DNA of 64,000 bases from Auanema rhodensis (Eukaryota > Animalia > Nematoda). Below the pieces are notes generated by a model, which did not search any database, was not told the origin of the DNA, and saw only the letters and a list, made by a program, of their open reading frames with translations. A program made the position numbers and the translations under genes. Each line of letters opens with the position of its first letter. The first letter of the stretch is position 1. Below are positions 10,262 to 47,895 of this stretch, one piece after another. The stretch is from the NCBI GenBank assembly GCA_964057225.1, contig OZ059898.1:10788001-10852000 (forward strand), read 5' to 3'.

Positions 10262-13200
10262 ATGACTGCCGGAATAGATCAGCAGCAACAAGTCTTGAGT
10301 ATGCTAGGTTTGTAATGATCGCTCAGCTTAATCAATTATTTTTTTTTAGAATCATTTAGCTTCCAAGATCCCTCCAATATGTTGGGCGGCCAGCAGTTTA
10401 TTCCTGGTCTTCTAGGAGGACCCATGGGCGGTCAATTTATGAATGGACCAGCTGGATCCCCATATCAAAACCAGAACCAACAACACATGCAGGTGAATTG
10501 ATGTTTTTTATTTGTATTTCAAGCAAAAGCTTCAGGATATATTCTCCTCAAGTCAGGCCAACAATGCTAGTGGAGGTTCTGGAGGCTCTCAGTCATACTC
10601 TGATACTCCTGCACGGCAGGGAGGGGGGAGTCTTGCTCCTGGTGCTCCAATCGCTCCGCCAAACGGAACAGATTCTTCTGGAGCACAACAAACTATTATA
10701 AGCCCATCTCAAGGTGGTGGAATTCCATCGTAAGCTTTCGATTTTCAATTCTGTTTTATGTGTATATGTTTAGTATTGCTTCGGGTGGAGTTCAATTTCA
10801 ATGCCCTCGTCGTCCCAACCATGGAGTTGAGGGAAGATCTATTCTTCTTCGTGCTAATCATTTTGCTGTTAGAATCCCTGGTGGTACAATTCAACATTAT
10901 ACTGTTGATGTCCAGCCAGATAAATGCCCTAGGCGTGTTAATCGGTATGATTGCATATTTCAAAAACAATTTGATTTTTTTAATTTAGGGAAATTATTGC
11001 GTGTATGATCCGTTCTTTCTCCAAATTCTTCAACAATATTAGGCCAGTCTATGATGGCAAACGTAATATGTACACTCGCGAGCCCCTTCCAATCGGCAGA
11101 GAGAAAACTGAGTTTGAGGTTACTTTACCGGGAGACTCTGCTGTAGAGAGACAATTCACTGTATCTGTCAAGTGGTGCAGTCAGGTTTGTTCAAAGTAGG
11201 AAATATGGTATAATTGTATATTTATTAGGTTTCTCTTTCAACTCTTGAAGATGCCATGGAAGGAAGAGTTCGTCAAGTTCCTTTCGAAGCTGTTCAAGCC
11301 ATGGATGTAATTCTTAGACATCTCCCTTCTTTGAAGTACACACCCGTTGGACGATCTTTCTTCTCTCCTCCAATGACATCTCATCAATCTGCTCCACATG
11401 GTCAGTATCACACTGAGAGCAAGCTTGGTGGTGGACGTGAAGTATGGTTCGGTTTTCATCAGTCTGTTAGACCAAGCCAGTGGAAGATGATGCTAAACAT
11501 TGATGGTGATTTTGTTTTACAAAGCTGAAGGTTCTAAATCAAGTTATTTAGTTTCCGCAACTGCATTTTATCGATCTATGCTAGTTATCGAATTCATCGC
11601 TGAAGTTCTTGAACTTCCCGTACAGGCATTGACTGAGCGCCGAGCGTTATCTGATGCACAACGAGTGAAATTCACAAAGGTAATTTTCTTTTTATAATTT
11701 CATTATTTATGCTGCTTCAGGAAATCCGTGGTCTGAAAATAGAAATCACTCACTGTGGACAAATGCGTCGTAAATACCGTGTTTGTAACGTTACCAGACG
11801 TCCAGCTCAAACTCAAACCTTCCCACTTCAATTAGAAACTGGTCAGACAATCGAATGCACTGTCGCTAAGTATTTCTATGACAAATACCGCATTCAATTG
11901 AAATATCCTCACTTGCCTTGTCTCCAGGTATTCCAAAACGAAAAAAAAATTATTTTCAAATCAACTAATTTCAGGTTGGTCAAGAGCAAAAGCATACCTA
12001 TCTTCCACCAGAGGTTTGTCATATTGTTGCTGGACAAAGATGTATCAAGAAACTAACTGATACTCAAACGTCCACTATGATCAAGGCAACTGCTAGATCT
12101 GCTCCTGAACGCGAGAGAGAGATCTCCAGTTTGGTTCGTAAAGCTGAATTCTCTGCTGATCCATTTGCACATGAATTCGGAATTGCTATTAATCCTGCTA
12201 TGACTGAAGTAAAAGGAAGAGTTCTTTCGGCCCCTAAACTGTTGTACGGTGGACGTACTAAGGCAACTGCTCTTCCAAATCAAGGAGTGTGGGATATGCG
12301 TGGAAAGCAATTCCATACTGGTATTGATGTCAAAGTATGGGCTATCGCCTGCTTCGCTCAACAACAACACGTCAAGGAGAATGATTTGAGGAACTTCACT
12401 GCTCAATTGCAGCGCATTTCCAACGATGCCGGAATGCCCATTATTGGCCAACCATGCTTCTGCAAGTAAGATTTATATTAATACTAAGTTTTTTATATTA
12501 TATTTGTTTTAAAGATATGCTGTTGGAGTTGATCAAGTTGAACCTATGTTCAAGTATTTAAAGCAGACATTCCAAGGAATTCAATTGGTTGTTGTCGTTC
12601 TTCCCGGAAAGACTCCAGTATATGGTTAGTTATTTAAGTTTAATTAATCACGTTACTTTTTTCTTTACAGCTGAAGTCAAGCGTGTCGGAGACACCGTTC
12701 TTGGAATTGCTACACAGTGTGTACAAGCCAAGAACGTTATTAAGACTACCCCACAGACTCTTTCCAACTTGTGTTTGAAGATGAACGTCAAGCTTGGAGG
12801 AGTTAACAGTATCCTTTTACCGGCTGTTCGTCCCCGCATATTTAATGAACCCGGTATGATATTTTGAGTTTGAAGAAATGTTACAGTATTTTTTAAGTAA
12901 TTTTCTTTGGTTGTGATATCACTCACCCTCCAGCCGGAGATTCTCGTAAACCCTCAATAGCCGCCGTTGTTGGAAGTATGGACGCACATCCAAGCAGGTA
13001 ATTTTGATTAAATTTTTTTCTATAATACGGTCATATTCTCAGATATGCTGCTACTGTGCGCGTTCAACAACATCGCCAAGAAATTATATACGATCTCACT
13101 TATATGGTCCGCGAGCTACTTGTACAGTTTTATCGTAACACTCGCTTCAAGCCTACCAGAATTGTTGTCTACCGTGATGGAGTATCTGAAGGACAGTTCT

Positions 13201-35713: not shown

Positions 35714-38700
35714 CTAAAACCCACTCCATTTTATATATGATCCCCATGAACCAGCTTGGTTATAAGCTTGACCATCTGTAAAATGATTAATTCTCAGTGC
35801 AAGAAAAGAACACAAAAACAAACCAAACTCGGCGGAACGCTTTAGAATCTCTACTTCATCATTCGAGAGTCGAAGCATAGTGTTCAGAATGGGTATTAAT
35901 TGAAATTTTTCGGCTTTTACTCGTTCTGGTGTCAAAAACTAAAAAAAAAAGATGATAAATTTACACGCTCTCAGCAAAGAAAGTCGGCTTTTTGTAATCA
36001 ATCAATTAGAGTGGTTTTCAAATAAAAATGTTTTCAAAAACATATTTCCAGTTTTTTTAAGACTATTATGCTTCAGAATGTTAAGTGATTTACCTTAATT
36101 ATAACATTCTTTAGATACTCCATATTTTCGCTATGCTCTTTTCTTTCGTCGTTTCTTTCGAGACGCCTAATCTCTTCTTTCAAGAAACGGCTCTGAAAAT
36201 TATATAGTACTAAGAAGTTGACACCTGATCCTCAAAAGTATTCGTTGCCGTCAATGAAATAGTCACCTGTTCTATGAGGCGGCCATTAGCAGCTTCGCTC
36301 TCACTAAGCAATTCTCTAGTATGTTGAGCATGCTTTCTAAGGTTCTCTAATTCATCTATCAATTGCTCAAAAGTCATTGGAGATTCTACATCTATACACT
36401 GTACACCGTCCTTTTCCTGCATTGAGCCTTCTCCAAATAGAACATCTTCCAAAGATGGTTCCTGCAATTTTAACATTAAATTAATTAATAACAGCACCGA
36501 AAGTTTTCTCAATTTAGTAATAAATAATTCTAAATTCAAGTATATTTAGGCTAGATCAGGTCAAGTAAACATCAAGATATGTTTACATACATCGCCTCTT
36601 TCTCAAAAGCAGTACTACGCGCAACTAAAAATAAGCTGCAAGTCGAAAGAAACTGCTTTGTAGACAATGTGACGCAACAGATTTAAAAGAAAAGACACGT
36701 CAAACACAAATGAAGAAAACAGCTTGTTTAACTCACATGAATTTGAGAATCTTCGCCGAATGTTGCATTTGATAACTTTCCGGAGATTGTCGAATGGCAA
36801 CGGAAATCAGATGTATATTCACGGTCACTGAAATTTTGTCACTTCGGTTTCACATGAACAGAATAGTCACACAACTGTCAGTATTCGAGACACCACCAGC
36901 TACTTCGATGAAAAGAATGAGAAAGGAAAGAGATTGGAAGACATAAGAAAAAATAAGAAGGAGAAAGACAAGAGGGGTTGTGAGAGATTTAAAGTTAAAT
37001 TAGCAACAGACCTAAACTGAGGAAAGACAGCTGCTACTGGTGCTGTTCGGGCGGGACGTTGCTCCTTTCGGCTGTCATCCAGCTGCTTTAAAGCTTCCTC
37101 ACGCAGTTTTCTCTCTTCCCCTAACTGTTAAATAAAGAATAAGTCAAAGAACTTATTTTAGAAGTAGAAATTTTCATTGATATTTTTGAAAAATCAATGA
37201 AGAAAGCAATCAGATCTTCAACAGAAATAATAGAAAAAACATTTTGGGAGTCAGCATTTGAAATATATGAGCGGAAATACCTGTTTCTCAAGCTGATTTA
37301 TCTTGAAATTGCTTTTTTCTCGTTCGGAAGATAACAAATGTTCCACCTACAAACAAAACAACACATCATCGTAAGTACTTCAATGAACAACCTTATCATT
37401 ATGTATTTTAAGTGTGTCAATTTGACAAGTGAGACTATGTATATGTGCAGATAATTGAGTTTTTTCTATTGCGCCTTTCTCAAGATCTGATTTCGCAGCT
37501 CTAAGATCATCCATCCTAAATCACAGGTACTGAATTACAACTTAAGCTACTAGAGCTTACGTTGAAGCTAGAGACAGTTGAGCTTCATCAGATTCGCGAC
37601 GATAATTTCTATTCTCAGTTTCCAGATGTGATACTTGCTCACGAGCTCGGGACACATCATGTTGAAGGCTAGATCTATTCTCTCTATAATAAGTAAATAA
37701 ATTATATGAATTGAAGCTAAAATCCAATAACAAATAGTAAATAGCTGAAGGATTTTTATAATATAATTTATAATAGAGAGGCTATAGTGAGAAAATTAAA
37801 ACAACACTTCATTTTCCATTACGATTCTTAGAAGAGTTATTCAGATGATGCTGCTTTTTTTTAAGTATTTAACCAAATAATTCTTACTTTTTCAATTTTA
37901 TTAGATATTTGAAAAAGGGGTAGGGTGAAAACTTTTGATACATATTTAACACATACTTCAGTTGAGATATTGTTTCCTGCAGTTCACTAATTGTCATTTC
38001 CAGCTTTTCAATCTCCGTAGATTCGGATTCATGATTTTCCTGTTTTACTTTTTGTTCCAAAACAAATCTCGCTCTAGTCTTCCAATAAAAATAATAAGAT
38101 CTTGTAAAATTTAATAGAAAACACCTTGAAGTTTTCGTAATCTCTAGATAAATCATCAGCTCTACTCTCTGCAGAATCACGATCTACTCGTAATCTTTTA
38201 TTTTCTTCACGTTGAGTATCCAGAGTTTCTTCAAGTCTATAAAAAATATTTAAAAAAAAAAATGAAATATTTGATTTGTACTTATTAATCCTTCGTTGAG
38301 CAGTTGCCAACTCTTTACTAAGCTCCAAACGCTCAGAACCTCTATCATCTTCTACAGAACTCAAGCGTACTTTTACCTGTTCTAACTCTTCTCGCATTTC
38401 ATTTGTTCGAGCTCTCTCTTCTATAATAGAAACATAAGTAAAGAACAATAAAAGAAAAATTAAGACCTAATAGATCTTTGTTTAATCGTTCTACTTCAGC
38501 TCGAGACTCCATACTCTCCTTTGTCAACTTTTCCTCTGATGTTCTGAATAAAACTTTTTAATAAAACAAAGAAGAAAAACAATTAAAACTTTGTAGTGTG
38601 ATGTTGGCTCTTCAGCTTGGATAACTCCTCTTGTAAATTAGTAGTATTTATCAATGCTTCTTTCAATTCTTTTTGGAGATTATTGACCTAAAAAAGAATG

Positions 38701-39790: not shown

Positions 39791-42700
39791 TTATAAATCT
39801 ATCATGTCATGCTGAGCAGCATTTGAATGAGATTCAAAACGCAACACCTGAGACATTGTGTTGAGTTGTTCACCCATGATAGGTGATAGAGAACTGTGTT
39901 CAACAGCATTATTAGTGGAATGAATATCACAATAAATTTCTTTTTGTTCTTTTTTAACTTGTGTCCATTGTAAGATTTTGTAGCTGCTGTCTGATGGCCT
40001 GCCATTGAATTTCGCTAGTGCTGAGGCCATGTTGAAGTGTAAGCGAAGGCCAGTAACCTTTGTGAATGGCGATTACCTGAAAGCATTGCAAATGTGTCAA
40101 TGACAACTATTGAATAAAAAAACCTTTTGAATTGTCTCTTGTGCGCATATATTGGGAGTGGTATCTAGGGAACTGTAGGTTAACTTTCCAGCATCGTTAT
40201 CTTCTCCAACTAACACCTGCAATATAATACAGTTATATCAAAAATATAATTAGTCAATTCACTTTTACACATTGTTCAGCAGCATCAGAAATAGATTCCA
40301 AGTCATAGCCCCCTTCTAAGGCAAGAACTACTTTACCATCAGCATAGTTTAGAAGTTGACGTGTCATGTAGCCAAACATTGCTGCCGATACCTCGTATCC
40401 ACCAAGAACTTTAGGATGATTTCGAGCAGCATCGAAACCAGCAGACACAAGAATGAAACTCGGCTGAAACTGATCTAGTACTGGCTCAACTATTGCTCTC
40501 CAAGCAGCCAAGTATTCGGGATCTCTCATAACATCGCCAGAAAAGGGAACATTAATCGTATAGCCCTAAAAATAACAAATACAAATAAAATAAAAATTAG
40601 CGTTCTAACTTTTCCAGACCCACGCCCCAATTCGGTGACAGCACCAGTACCAGGATAAAAATTGCCATTATCGTGACGATGAAGAGAGATATAGATAACA
40701 TTTGGATCATCTTCAAAACATTGTTGAGTTCCGTTTCCATGATGTACATCCCAATCTATGATGGCAATCCTCTTGCATTTTTGTGGATATTTAATTTGCA
40801 ACTGTCGAGCACAGATTGCCACATTATTGAAGAAACAGAAACCCATAGCCTTAACAAATTACATAGTTTTATAGAATCAAGAGTTTAAATCTAACATGAT
40901 CAGGTTCTGCGTGATGCCCGGGAGGTCTAATACAAGCAAAACCATTTTTTAATCGTCCTTCCACCACTTGAGATGCTAATTCGATAAGGGAACCAGTAGC
41001 AATTCGAGCAGCAAGTTGAGTACTATTGTCGTTAAAATAGGTATCTGTATCAATTCCTATCCCTCCGCATCCTAGCTGAAATAAAAGGCTATAAAGTAAA
41101 AAGATAGGCACTACTTCATACCTGTACAAAACTTTTCACCGGTAATTGTGATGTCTCAATTTTTAGGCAAGCAGTAGGCGACACAGCGAAAAAGGTTACA
41201 TATGTTGGTGTATGCACCAAACGTAATTGGTCAAGAGAAGCTTTTTTAGCTAATACTTTCTCACATCTGTAAACTACATTTGGTTAAATGAACGAGCGAG
41301 TTTTTTTTTACTTTTGCACCAATCCTGATTCTAATAATCTAGCCCAAATACTTTGAACTCTACCCCCATGTTCAATATGAGTGTTGGTCTCTCCACAGGT
41401 GCATTCATGTTTCGACATTGCAATATCATAAGTTAAACCAGTAGCACTTGCTGATATGGCAGATTCAGAGGTTGTAGCGAGTTGTTTAGAGGATAAAAGA
41501 CTGTTTGAGTATGCATCATCATCTTCCTGTTCTTCTCTAAATTTTTTCACAATTTTCGAGAGATAATAAAAAAATACTTACCTTACAAGACTTTTACGCC
41601 TCAAAACAAGTTCTCGAAGCTGCTGCTTCAGAAGTGATGGGTATCCACCAACTGGCAGGTTTTGGGATAAACCCAAAGGGAAACGAGGATCAAGCTTATT
41701 TTTATCAATTGCTGACTAAATAATATAGTAAAATTTAATAATTTTGTGGGCAAACCAACATCATCAATACCAGCTCCTAAACCGAGTTGAGCTTGAAATA
41801 GACTAGGAAGACTCAAAAACGGTGTTAATTGAGCTGCAGCAAGAAGCGAAGGTATATCTTTAAAAAAAAAAGTAAACATAAAAAAATGCCTTTTAAAAAC
41901 CGAGAGGCAGTTGAGTTGGAATTGTATTCGCTGCTAAGTTTGGTAAACTTGGAGAAGGGACCATTAAGTTTTGTGCTAAAGCAGTATTCGCACTCAATAA
42001 TGCATCAACTGGTAAATTGCCAGCAGCTGAAGTCTCGCTGTCGCTTCTAAAAGAATGAAAACTTAATAGTTACCTAAAAGTACAATACCGTTTCAAGGGT
42101 GGATGTGAATAGTTGAAGGTGGGAGGGTTTTGAACAGGACTGCTACCCTTGCTCAAGAGTTTTGCTCTAATTCTCATCTTCAGATTTGGTTCACTGTTCA
42201 CCTGAAAACATTCATCATGATTTATTTTTAAAAAACAGCATTTTCATAATTTCTGATCACTTGTTTAAAACCGAGAAATCATTGCACCAGAAAATGTGAC
42301 TGCGTAAACTTGACGCAGACATGAACTTCTACTTTTCAAGTATTTTTTTTAACATGAACAAGGTTGTGCCTGTTGTAATCTCACCAAATTTTGAAAAGAA
42401 TCAATCAAAATTAAAAAAAAAGATAGTAGGAGTAGAAAAAAAACAATATACCTTTCTTAATTGGTGAAATTCAGGTTGTTGCGAGGATTGCTGTGTTGTT
42501 TGATGGTGGGAAGATGGAACCCTATATGGTTCAAAATGAGGAGAACTAACATTAACCTAAATAAATAAAATTGAGACATGGCATAAAAATTATTGAAATA
42601 CCTGTGGACTCATGGGTTGATGAGGTGGAGTTCCAGATAGACTTCCTTGACTGCCTTCTTTATTTCTTTGGGCAATCATATTTTTTAATCTATCTTTTGT

Positions 42701-44147: not shown

Positions 44148-44705
44148 AGTAAAAGGCTTATCCTGCAAATTAGATATATTAAAGATGCCACCTGTCATCA
44201 CGTGTGCTATGGAAAAATGATCACATGATTAAATAATTTTCATATAGATTTTTAATATAAAATAAAAGATGTACTTCTTCTAACTTCAATAGAGCTTTAA
44301 CTTTGACTTCAGATTGAAAAGTAGGCTTTCAGGAGAAGAAGCACGGGACTTCAGATGAATCCGAACAGCATGTCTGCGAGTCTGACTAGCTCCGCCCAAA
44401 TTTCTATTCGTCTGTCTCTTTTTTTTGCAATGGAGCGCATATTAAGCAAAAATTTTAAGACGTTCGATCTTCATAAAATCTTTTTTTTCTAAAGAGTTGT
44501 TAATTCTTTGTGTTTTATTATTCTTCATCAATAAATTAGGTTTTTTTTGCATCATATTCGAATTTCTATTGGTTCCAACCTACCTATCACGTTAATGTTG
44601 TAATACAGGAATTATATGTTTATAGATTTCTGTGCTTTCCAAAGTTATTGATTCACAACATTTATCAAGGCTTCTAGTCTTCTATGAATATTCTAAATTC
44701 ATAGA
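44148..44705. promoter_or_regulatory. Divergent (bidirectional) promoter region between hda-4 and COP1
   Basis: The start codons face away from each other ~560 bp apart, with a GC-richer core around 44340-44440. Confidence 0.55.
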
Positions 44706-47534
44706 ATGGAATTGCCGTTTATGACAAAACGAAAGCGTAGGGCAAATGATACCATTAATGGTCAGAAATAGCACCAAACCGTAAGCATAAATCATTTTTT
44801 CAAGATATTTTCGACCCCACATCTGTTAAACCTTCAACATCTGAGCTACTACATTGGAAACATCCAACGGGTGATATTTGGTGAGTATAAATTTCTGATA
44901 AGCCTTATTGCTTTTTTTAAGTGAAATTTGTTTACAAGATGTTCGACAACCAATAATAACCCCTTGTATGCATGTGTTCTGCTATGGATGTATAGAGGAA
45001 AGTATTAAAGTTCGACGAGTATGCCCTAAATGTTCTCAAGGTCCCCTGGATGTAATGGTAAAAAGGTCCTCAGTCTTGAATTATGATATAATCTCATTCA
45101 GGACCTTGTTTCAGTACCTCCTCAACCAGAGGAAAGGAAACAGGAGAAGGTAAAATAATCTGAAAATTAAACAATCACTCTAATATAGGTGGATATGAAC
45201 GATATATCTGAAATATTTTCAATTATTGCTCGTTCTAATCTTGTGACTTCGGAAATTGATGATATGATTAAAGTGCTATCTAAAAAACGAGCAGATCTTT
45301 GTGTTGGACAAGCGACCACCACTGATTCATTAGTAGGCATGTTTTATCCTATACCAATCTTAATATTATTTGGATAGTTTAGATATATTCACGAGAGAAA
45401 TTTTACGAAGGAAAGAATTACAACTATCTAATATTGTTAGGCAATGTGATATTATCAAAAAAGATCGAGATGTCGTTACTTCTGTGAGCTTAATGCCTTA
45501 TTTTAGTCTTTTATAAATCTTTCATGTAAAAACGAATTTGTTTAGAGGTTGCACACATCTATTGGGACATCACGTGGAACACGAACACAGGTGATTTTAC
45601 CCGTATTTATATATCGCTAAGATTTAATACTATTCATTTATCTCTCTATAATGAAGTTGCATAAATGAGTTCGTAAAATGAACATTCAGGGAGTCGATAA
45701 TTTGACGGAGCGCATGCTGAAACATTTTGACGGACTACAAGCATACTACACAGAGCTATTAAACCGAACTCCTAATGGATCAGGCACGTTTCTGTGTTAA
45801 TTTTTTTCATTTAAATTATCTTAAGAAAACGACGTGTCACAAACTACTGTGTGTCCAGAATGTGAAGGTGGATGTAAAAACGATGAAGATAGACTAGATC
45901 GTATGGGAAATGTAAGGCGTATATTTTCATGTAGACACAAAATGTATTACTTGTCAGGTTATCAAAGGAGTGGCGAAGTATGGACAGGTAGAACGAATAG
46001 CATCATTAAATTATGATATTGAAATTCCTCCACAGCAATCCATAGTCTCGAGGTATGGCATAAAAAGACAATTTTTATTCATTCTTTTTTGCAGTTTGGA
46101 ATTTGACAAAGATGGAGAATTATTCGTTGTTGCTGGTGTAACAAAAAGAATAAAAATATTCAGTTATGATAGTGTTGTGAGCGCCCCCGATGGCCTGCAT
46201 TATCCCTTAGGTCAACTTCGATGTCGAAGCAAAATAAGGTAAGTTATTACTTCTTTGTTTGTTAGTACTTTTTACTGTTTGTAGCAATGTGTCATGGAGT
46301 CAATTTCAAAAAGAATTGTTATGTAGTAGTGATTATGATGGAACCATTAATGTTTGGGATATAAACACGGTATGTTTATACTTTTGCTTTTTGATATTTG
46401 AGATAATTTTTTTTACAGCAGCAAGTTGTAAAAACATTCCACGAGCATGAGAAGCGTTGCTGGACTGTACATTTTAATAACGTTGATCGGCATTTATTGG
46501 CAAGCGGCAGCGATGATGCTAAAGTATGGCTATTATTAAGTTGTTTTAGTTTATTTGCTATATCACTTAATTATGGGTAGTATTTCTGAGATATGAGCTT
46601 GAAAGAAATCTGTCTTCTGGTTTACTGAGTCTAAGTATAATGTTTAAAAAGCGAAAATAGTATGCTTGTTCTAACTACATATCTACCATCTTTAGTTTTT
46701 CCTAATTTTTAACATTTGAGTTCATTTTATGACATGACCTTGTTCAAGTTTACGCTAACATATTTCATTTTCCCTTATTTGAAATATTTTAGGTAAAAAT
46801 CTGGAGTCTAAATTGTGACAGATCTGTTACTAGTATTGATGCAAAAGTTAATGTATGTTGTGTATGCTTTAGTCCAACTAACAAATTTCATCTTGCATTC
46901 GGCTCAGCTGGTAAGATAGTTGATATTCGAAATGTTTCAATATTCGTAGTGTTTCAGATCATACTGTACATATGTATGATATTAGACAACCAACTTCTCC
47001 CTTAAATATCTTTAAAGGACATAAAAAAGCCGTATCCTATGTTCGCTATTTGAATGAAGACCAAATAGTCTCGGCGTATGTGTTCTATCCACTTGAAGAA
47101 TATTTTATTCCGAGCTTTCAGATCGACGGATAGTACTTTACGCGTATGGTGTGCCAAAACGGGAAGATGTATTCGAATATTACGGGGACATATCAATGAG
47201 AAAAACTTTGTAGGACTTAGTGATAATGGAAGTGATCATGTTATGTGTGGTATAGTCCGATGTTTAAATATGAAGTTCGTTTTTATTTTTTCAGGAAGTG
47301 AAAACGGAAGTGTTTTCTTCTATCATAAGTATATCTCAGAGCCTGTGCTTGCCAGTTATGTAGGAAAAGATGATTCTGTTGGAGATCCCGAAGGCTTCAT
47401 CTCTTCCGTTTGTTGGAAGAAGGTATTGTCATCTATTGGTTTCAATATATAAACTTATCTCTTTCTTTCAGAACTCAGATATTGTTGTTGTTGCAAATAG
47501 TTATGGAAGTGTGCAATTTTTAAAGCTTTCATAG
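44706..47534 (+). CDS. COP1: E3 ubiquitin ligase COP1/RFWD2 (C3HC4 RING, coiled coil, WD40)
   Basis: [45 protein letters not shown]1-specific WD40 segments: [29 protein letters not shown]...CRSKISNVSW...[26 protein letters not shown]...[37 protein letters not shown] and [11 protein letters not shown]. Confidence 0.93.
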
Positions 47535-47895
47535 TCTTTTGGTTGTGAATAGTTCCCTGTGAATGTTATTTTCTTTTCCCGGTTTTGATGACTGTATAAA
47601 TTAATAAAAGAGAAAAATATATAATTTTTACTTAGTTATTATCTGGCTGAAACCCCAATTTAAATATCTTATGGGTATGTACTCTTTGAATATACATAAT
47701 AATGAAAATGAGGATTGTATTCCTTCCAAAGAGTTCCTCTGTCGTCCATTTGGTATCCATTTGCTCTGAACAATATTGTTTAACAAATTGAGCTTGAAAT
47801 GGAATTAACTCACAGGTACTTCTGATAAAATGCGGGAGGTGTTTCCGTTGTTGTCGTATAACTCATTAAAGGATTAGGAAAATTTTGAATATTAA

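Follow-up and report, generated by a model that had tools for sequence, protein, structure and literature searches.

An intact, transcribed gene for a very probable COP1 (RFWD2) orthologue in a rhabditid nematode

In plants, COP1 acts in concert with SPA proteins and photoreceptors; to our knowledge, animals have no SPA proteins. Among the closest known counterparts of the gene reported here are human COP1 (RFWD2; PDB 5IGQ, 5HQG, 9LTR) and Arabidopsis COP1 (PDB 6QTO, 5IGO). The Val-Pro (VP) pocket of the Arabidopsis protein is made up of Trp467 and Phe595 (hydrophobic), Lys422 and Tyr441 (anchor), and His528 (Lau et al., PMC6745501), and the cryogenic electron microscopy structure of human COP1-DET1 defines a DET1 contact face a (E492, T494, E511, H512, D525) and a second contact at V686-R691 (PMC12808801). 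A published search with hidden Markov models found neither a COP1 nor a DET1 homologue in Caenorhabditis elegans (PMC4232591, Table 1), which bears out what a first, sequence-only reading of the present DNA had stated about COP1 in that species, and the fly genome is said, in a passage of PMC7923445 citing Yi and Deng 2005, to be without COP1. The window analysed here, a stretch of 64,000 nucleotides (contig OZ059898.1 of assembly GCA_964057225.1, positions 10,788,001 to 10,852,000), carries at 44706-47534 on its forward strand a gene that is very probably the COP1 orthologue of a rhabditid nematode close to Auanema.

Similarity searches of the gene were made with single exons. The first WD40 blade (exon 11, 46095..46238), of which 46096-46236 was searched against PDB at E values up to 1, is COP1-specific: all 8 distinct sequences matched are COP1/RFWD2, human COP1 being the best (1.6e-11), which excludes chance. 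The best eight matches of exon 15 (46958..47075) are all COP1 (E 5.5e-11 to 2.8e-8), followed by plant RUP2 at 0.002; exon 17 (47295..47422), encoding the last blades with a shortened surface loop, matches COP1 only; exon 13 (46419..46523) aligns to residues 506-537 of human COP1, and exon 12 (46285..46369) has an ungapped match to residues 476-499. Exon 3 (44922..45057) is assigned to Pfam zf-C3HC4 (PF00097, E 2.5e-10), with all eight zinc-ligand positions readable and the first cysteine encoded by a split codon (44879-80 + 44922), and its PDB matches include the human COP1 RING (residues 138-174). Searched alone, this exon places RNF4 and others above COP1; it is uninformative about the family because RINGs are too short to discriminate.

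An exhaustive search with exon 11 returned 198 proteins at E<=1e-3. The best of these, P0001, is an 'unnamed protein product' of 588 amino acids from Auanema sp. JU1783 (GCA_943334845.2) and runs collinear with the window gene along its residues 1-588; those listed relatives of P0001 that carry names are COP1/RFWD2, and plant SPA proteins appeared only in the search with P0061. A C3HC4 RING, a COP1-type seven-blade WD40 domain and the VP pocket were all found in the window gene itself, and phylogenetic grouping with COP1 was found by proxy, through P0001. The sequence-only reading had itself raised the alternative that the gene belongs to another RING-WD40 family, TRAF7 or RFWD3, and merely resembles COP1. 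Exons 12 and 16, which when searched alone against PDB rank designed or generic WD40 proteins first, could be taken in that sense; this ranking arises because repeated matches add up, and is no evidence against COP1. No TRAF7 or RFWD3 chain occurs among the matches of the COP1-specific exons, even up to E 1 for exon 11; the matches of exons 11, 15 and 17 begin with COP1 chains or consist of nothing else; collinearity with proteins named COP1 or RFWD2 by their sources extends along the entire length; and P0001 falls inside the COP1 clade of a gene tree in which plant SPA proteins lie outside the animal and fungal COP1 group. Membership of a different RING-WD40 family is therefore extremely improbable.

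The complete RING and WD40 gene proposed by the sequence-only reading is borne out as an open reading frame over 18 exons and 17 introns, derived by hand from the sequence and ending exactly where that reading had placed its ends (ATG 44706-08, TAG 47532-34). The coding exons total 1773 nucleotides, equal to 590 codons plus the stop codon; phases are consistent, and none of the 9 split codons is a stop. The encoded order is an N-terminal basic patch resembling a nuclear localization signal (NLS), the C3HC4 RING, a helical linker, and a seven-blade WD40 domain whose blades are encoded by exons 11-18.

Transcript evidence consists of contigs from four public runs (X1-X4), all of one study, placed along 44400-47800. 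About half of the gene's sampled words are present in the four runs, which fits exon-only sequence. Full-length contigs measure 1938-1942 nucleotides, and in each of the four runs the main contigs are fully spliced; contig joints show 15 of the 17 introns directly, at the predicted places, and no base differences or indels between contigs and window were reported. All full-length contigs begin at 44624, preceded by loose unmatched letters (CCAAGTTTG; in two runs CAAGTTTG) that we take to be the 3' end of the nematode spliced leader SL1; the mRNA would therefore be trans-spliced at the acceptor AG at 44624..44625, leaving a 5' untranslated region (UTR) of 80 nucleotides (44626-44705). At the other end the contigs stop at 47609-47612, just after AATAAA at 47603-08, so that the 3' end of the mRNA occupies 47603..47612. 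The remaining two introns follow from arithmetic: 8 loose SL1 letters, 2 for the AG shared with SL1, 80 of 5' UTR, 1773 of coding sequence and 76 of 3' UTR sum to 1939, the length of the contig record. Because the contigs are spliced and led by SL1, the four runs can sensibly be read only as RNA. COP1 is an intact gene whose mRNA is trans-spliced to SL1, fully spliced and polyadenylated, and the removal of all 17 introns as modelled disposes of the concern that transcripts might be absent or frameshifted.

Most introns of the gene are 39-49 nucleotides long, the same as in adjoining genes, and the description of them as short and native in style stands, with the correction that two of them are GC..AG and not GT..AG. 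Introns 5 (45337-45382; joint 45333>45380, with 3 ambiguous letters) and 8 (45784-45825; joint 45781>45824, with 2 ambiguous letters) are GC..AG introns that are spliced in all four runs, with no GT..AG solution within the ambiguity of the joints. Alternative GT..AG models for the two (for intron 5 one of 37 nucleotides starting at 45341, for intron 8 one with its donor at 45788) break the frame given the observed joints, and only GC..AG fits. The sole long intron, intron 13 (46524-46792, 269 nucleotides), is covered in all four runs by contigs of low depth (2-4), which could represent unspliced precursor or a separate small transcript. These contigs and the two weak GC donors could be taken as signs of a gene that is decaying while still transcribed. 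Such decay is nonetheless very improbable: no stop interrupts the frame in any of the 18 exons, every run has fully spliced main contigs, and comparison with the sister species gives a pN of 0.10 against saturated synonymous sites, with exon 16 identical throughout.

That comparison, made exon by exon with P0001, found 410 of 494 aligned residues identical (83%), with 100% identity in exon 16 (47122..47249). No numeric dN/dS is given, synonymous sites being saturated (pS 0.82); because pN is low while synonymous sites are saturated, the sequences point to strong purifying selection on COP1 since the split from Auanema sp. JU1783. The two genes share neighbours as well as the two intron positions that were checked. 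A gene with a Rab-binding/GRIP coiled-coil domain (Rab_bind, 36213-36539, minus strand) and a histone deacetylase gene (Hist_deacetyl, 40257-40846, minus strand) precede COP1 in the window, and the order Rab_bind(-), Hist_deacetyl(-), COP1(+) is common to the window and the JU1783 contig. Both GC-donor introns of the window occur in the JU1783 contig at the same positions and in the same phase (near 10635 and 11111); there they start with GT. By these shared features the window's species is a close relative of Auanema sp. JU1783; programmed DNA elimination has been reported for Auanema rhodense (preprint 10.64898/2026.08.27.747507). The genes differ further in the N-terminal exons 2, 4 and 7, which can be aligned only with gaps.

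These observations confirm the sequence-only reading's view of the gene as native. Contaminating or horizontally acquired DNA would have to be considered only because C. elegans is without COP1, and nothing was found in its favour, so that its probability is negligible: the mRNA carries the SL1 leader, most introns have the length usual in the adjacent genes, gene order and intron positions both agree with those of Auanema sp. JU1783, and the gene tree follows nematode systematics.

All five VP-pocket residues are identical in the window gene: the Lys corresponding to Arabidopsis K422 (…CRSKI, exon 11), the Tyr corresponding to Tyr441 in Arabidopsis and Tyr491 in human COP1 (SSDY, exon 12), the Trp corresponding to Trp467 and Trp517, respectively (EHEKRCW, exon 13), the His corresponding to H528 (the first codon of exon 15, which also encodes GHKKAVSY), and the Phe of NEKNFVGL in exon 16, a motif that contains the equivalents of Arabidopsis K593 and F595; the exon also encodes STDSTLR. 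NEKNFVGL is kept across the COP1 proteins examined, Brugia reading NERNFVGL. As read from the sequence, the RING zinc ligands and every WD40 residue of the Val-Pro degron pocket of plant and human COP1 are kept. DET1 face a reads D, T, E, H, D in the window gene, four of five residues being identical and the fifth a conservative replacement of E492 by Asp; the equivalents of E511, H512 and D525 are encoded by exon 13.

The window protein shares with human COP1 the order of RING, helical middle part and seven-blade WD40 domain, the first blade, NEKNFVGL, the VP pocket and DET1 face a. Unlike human COP1 it has a linker with a cysteine triad, and it is without the Gly/Ser-rich N-terminus of the human protein (590 versus 731 residues); its counterpart of the DET1-touching loop at human 686-691 is short and unlike. 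With Arabidopsis COP1 it shares the pocket residues K422, Y441, W467, H528 and F595 and a last-blade loop of similar length. Its RING reads CMHVFC, whereas most COP1 proteins read CGH[ST]FC. The protein would dimerise through its helical middle part and recruit an E2 through its RING, and the top face of the propeller would bind proteins with a VP motif (bZIP or ETS factors, or a Tribbles adaptor), marking them for the proteasome. DET1-DDB1-CUL4 is a probable partner in this, since DET1 face a differs at only one of its five residues, by the conservative Glu-to-Asp replacement.

COP1 in a nematode is not new, and the gene itself is unremarkable, an orthologue of a ligase that has been studied well; the surprise implied by the sequence-only reading was overstated. 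A word search with P0001 found publicly deposited COP1 orthologues from more than 20 species of nematode, including Steinernema, Bursaphelenchus, Acrobeloides, Plectus, Ditylenchus, Aphelenchoides, Meloidogyne, Heterodera, Globodera and Syphacia, seven filarial species (among them Brugia malayi, Bm9906) and Caenorhabditis auriculariae, and some of these entries are already named, such as the Aphelenchoides 'E3 ubiquitin-protein ligase RFWD2'. WormBase also labels Brugia malayi Bm12912 as DET1 (PMC10073474). In a maximum likelihood tree of 44 proteins (quick search, with support from the Shimodaira-Hasegawa-like approximate likelihood ratio test, SH-aLRT, only), all nematode COP1 proteins, including those of Aphelenchoides, B. 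malayi, Steinernema, Bursaphelenchus, Plectus and C. auriculariae, form one clade (SH-aLRT 100) inside animal COP1, and its sub-clades match nematode systematics. A rhabditine group (support 97) unites Auanema P0001, an unnamed transcript (P0151) and C. auriculariae; the nematode entries just named are 38-46% identical to P0001 and P0151, the rhabditine proteins having the faster rate of evolution.

Along the propeller, the Auanema and C. auriculariae proteins share 57% identity, and the latter retains the residues of the pocket; C. auriculariae represents the basal lineage of its genus (PMC7991662). The distribution and the tree support vertical inheritance of COP1 in nematodes, its presence still at the base of Caenorhabditis, and a later loss in C. 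elegans. The loss looks late, as the sequence-only reading had proposed, because the basal lineage has COP1 with an intact pocket. The predicted C. auriculariae protein (827 amino acids; CAJGYM010000136.1, 8001-16114) carries about 135 additional residues within its last-blade loop, and its branch in the tree is very long; the additional residues may be a real insertion or intron sequence retained in the gene model. Strongylids, Pristionchus, Oscheius and other Caenorhabditis contributed no COP1 to the matches listed for word-index searches with P0061 and P0151, which were limited to 8000 candidates, a pattern that hints at repeated loss in these groups. Literature searches found no paper on COP1 in nematodes, and two papers on NIPI-3 do not mention COP1.

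Thus, the common shorthand needs correcting: the model worm is without COP1, and the nematode phylum has it. Placing the loss inside the genus Caenorhabditis provides a natural comparison of the Tribbles/C-EBP module with and without its usual ligase, and because Auanema species are culturable, a knockout or pull-down is feasible. We tentatively propose, as a possibility short of an even chance, that COP1, probably with DET1, survived in rhabditines to the base of Caenorhabditis and that several independent losses followed, in crown Caenorhabditis and perhaps also among strongylids and diplogastrids. If this is true, Auanema-like worms would be rare free-living, culturable rhabditids in which Tribbles-driven turnover of C/EBP still passes through COP1, a dependence that the sequence-only reading had suggested as possible, and C. 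elegans NIPI-3 would have switched to a different ligase or to simple sequestration.

Several points weigh against a conventional COP1 pathway at this locus or against the strength of the case for it. The rhabditine branches of the tree are long (1.21 for Auanema, 2.31 for C. auriculariae), so that partners or substrates may have shifted, and the second DET1 contact loop (human 686-691) is shorter in the window gene and has no alignable counterpart there. The tree and the full-length comparisons use P0001 as a stand-in for the window protein; the coiled coil is putative, assigned from the collinearity of exons 5-8 with the same region of COP1 orthologues; and RNA support comes from a single study, whose runs were labelled as RNA by guess only. 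The long branches and the unconserved contact loop would be accommodated if the gene were a true COP1 orthologue that is a stand-alone RING E3 or has rewired substrates, the DET1-CRL4 partnership or the Tribbles VP tail having been lost or changed in rhabditines as a step towards the loss in C. elegans. COP1 action independent of CRL4 is possible (PMC12808801), and the hint of repeated loss, from the missing strongylid, Pristionchus, Oscheius and other Caenorhabditis matches, is in keeping with such a course. On the other hand, DET1 face a is nearly identical, its single change being conservative, purifying selection on the gene has been strong ever since its divergence from Auanema sp. JU1783, and the intact VP pocket makes a change in substrate capture unlikely. 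We accordingly judge a stand-alone or rewired COP1 unlikely, though not remote, beside COP1 acting with DET1-DDB1-CUL4.

The linker that precedes the WD40 domain contains the cysteine-rich segment VCPECEGGC (45849-45875, in exon 9, 45826..45911), to which the sequence-only reading had drawn attention and which is real: a C-x2-C-x3-C triad in a variable region. It is kept in Auanema sp. JU1783 (LCNECEGAC) and occurs in none of the 9 other COP1 proteins examined, which marks the triad as an apparently lineage-specific feature.

The remaining exons complete the model. Exon 1 (44706..44760, followed by a joint at 44761-44804) encodes the start codon and the NLS-like basic patch KRKRR and aligns with P0001 residues 1-17; exon 2 (44805..44880) encodes a variable N-terminal segment, its last two bases opening the codon of the first RING cysteine; and exon 4 (45102..45149) encodes a short linker, exons 2 and 4 both being delimited by contig joints. 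Exon 5 (45189..45336), collinear with P0001, encodes the post-RING helical region, the first part of the stretch that in COP1 forms the coiled coil, and is followed by the first GC..AG intron; exon 6 (45383..45483), with contig joints and 82% identity to P0001, encodes the second part. Contig joints also define exon 7 (45546..45590), a variable linker, and a contig joint defines exon 8 (45690..45783), which encodes a conserved helix (…HFDGLQAYY…) before the WD40 domain and precedes the second GC..AG intron. Exon 10 (45958..46052), 84% identical to P0001, encodes the lead-in strand of the propeller; exon 14 (46793..46910), a blade that follows the long intron with its joint at 46524-46792, is 92% identical; and exon 18 (47472..47534), placed from the sequence with contig pieces from 47470, encodes the closing strand and ends in the stop codon. 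Intron 12 has a tandem acceptor, CAGCAG (46416-46421), of which the contigs use the first AG, giving an exon start at 46419; use of the second AG would remove one Gln.

Elsewhere in the window lies an Argonaute gene with PAZ, L2 and Mid domains (11709-12466, plus strand). A further gene, probably on the minus strand, lies just downstream of the COP1 3' end (47654-47800 and beyond); in run X3 its contig depth is about 210-230, compared with 31 for COP1, and a loose contig end at 47765 resembles a further short intron of this neighbour.

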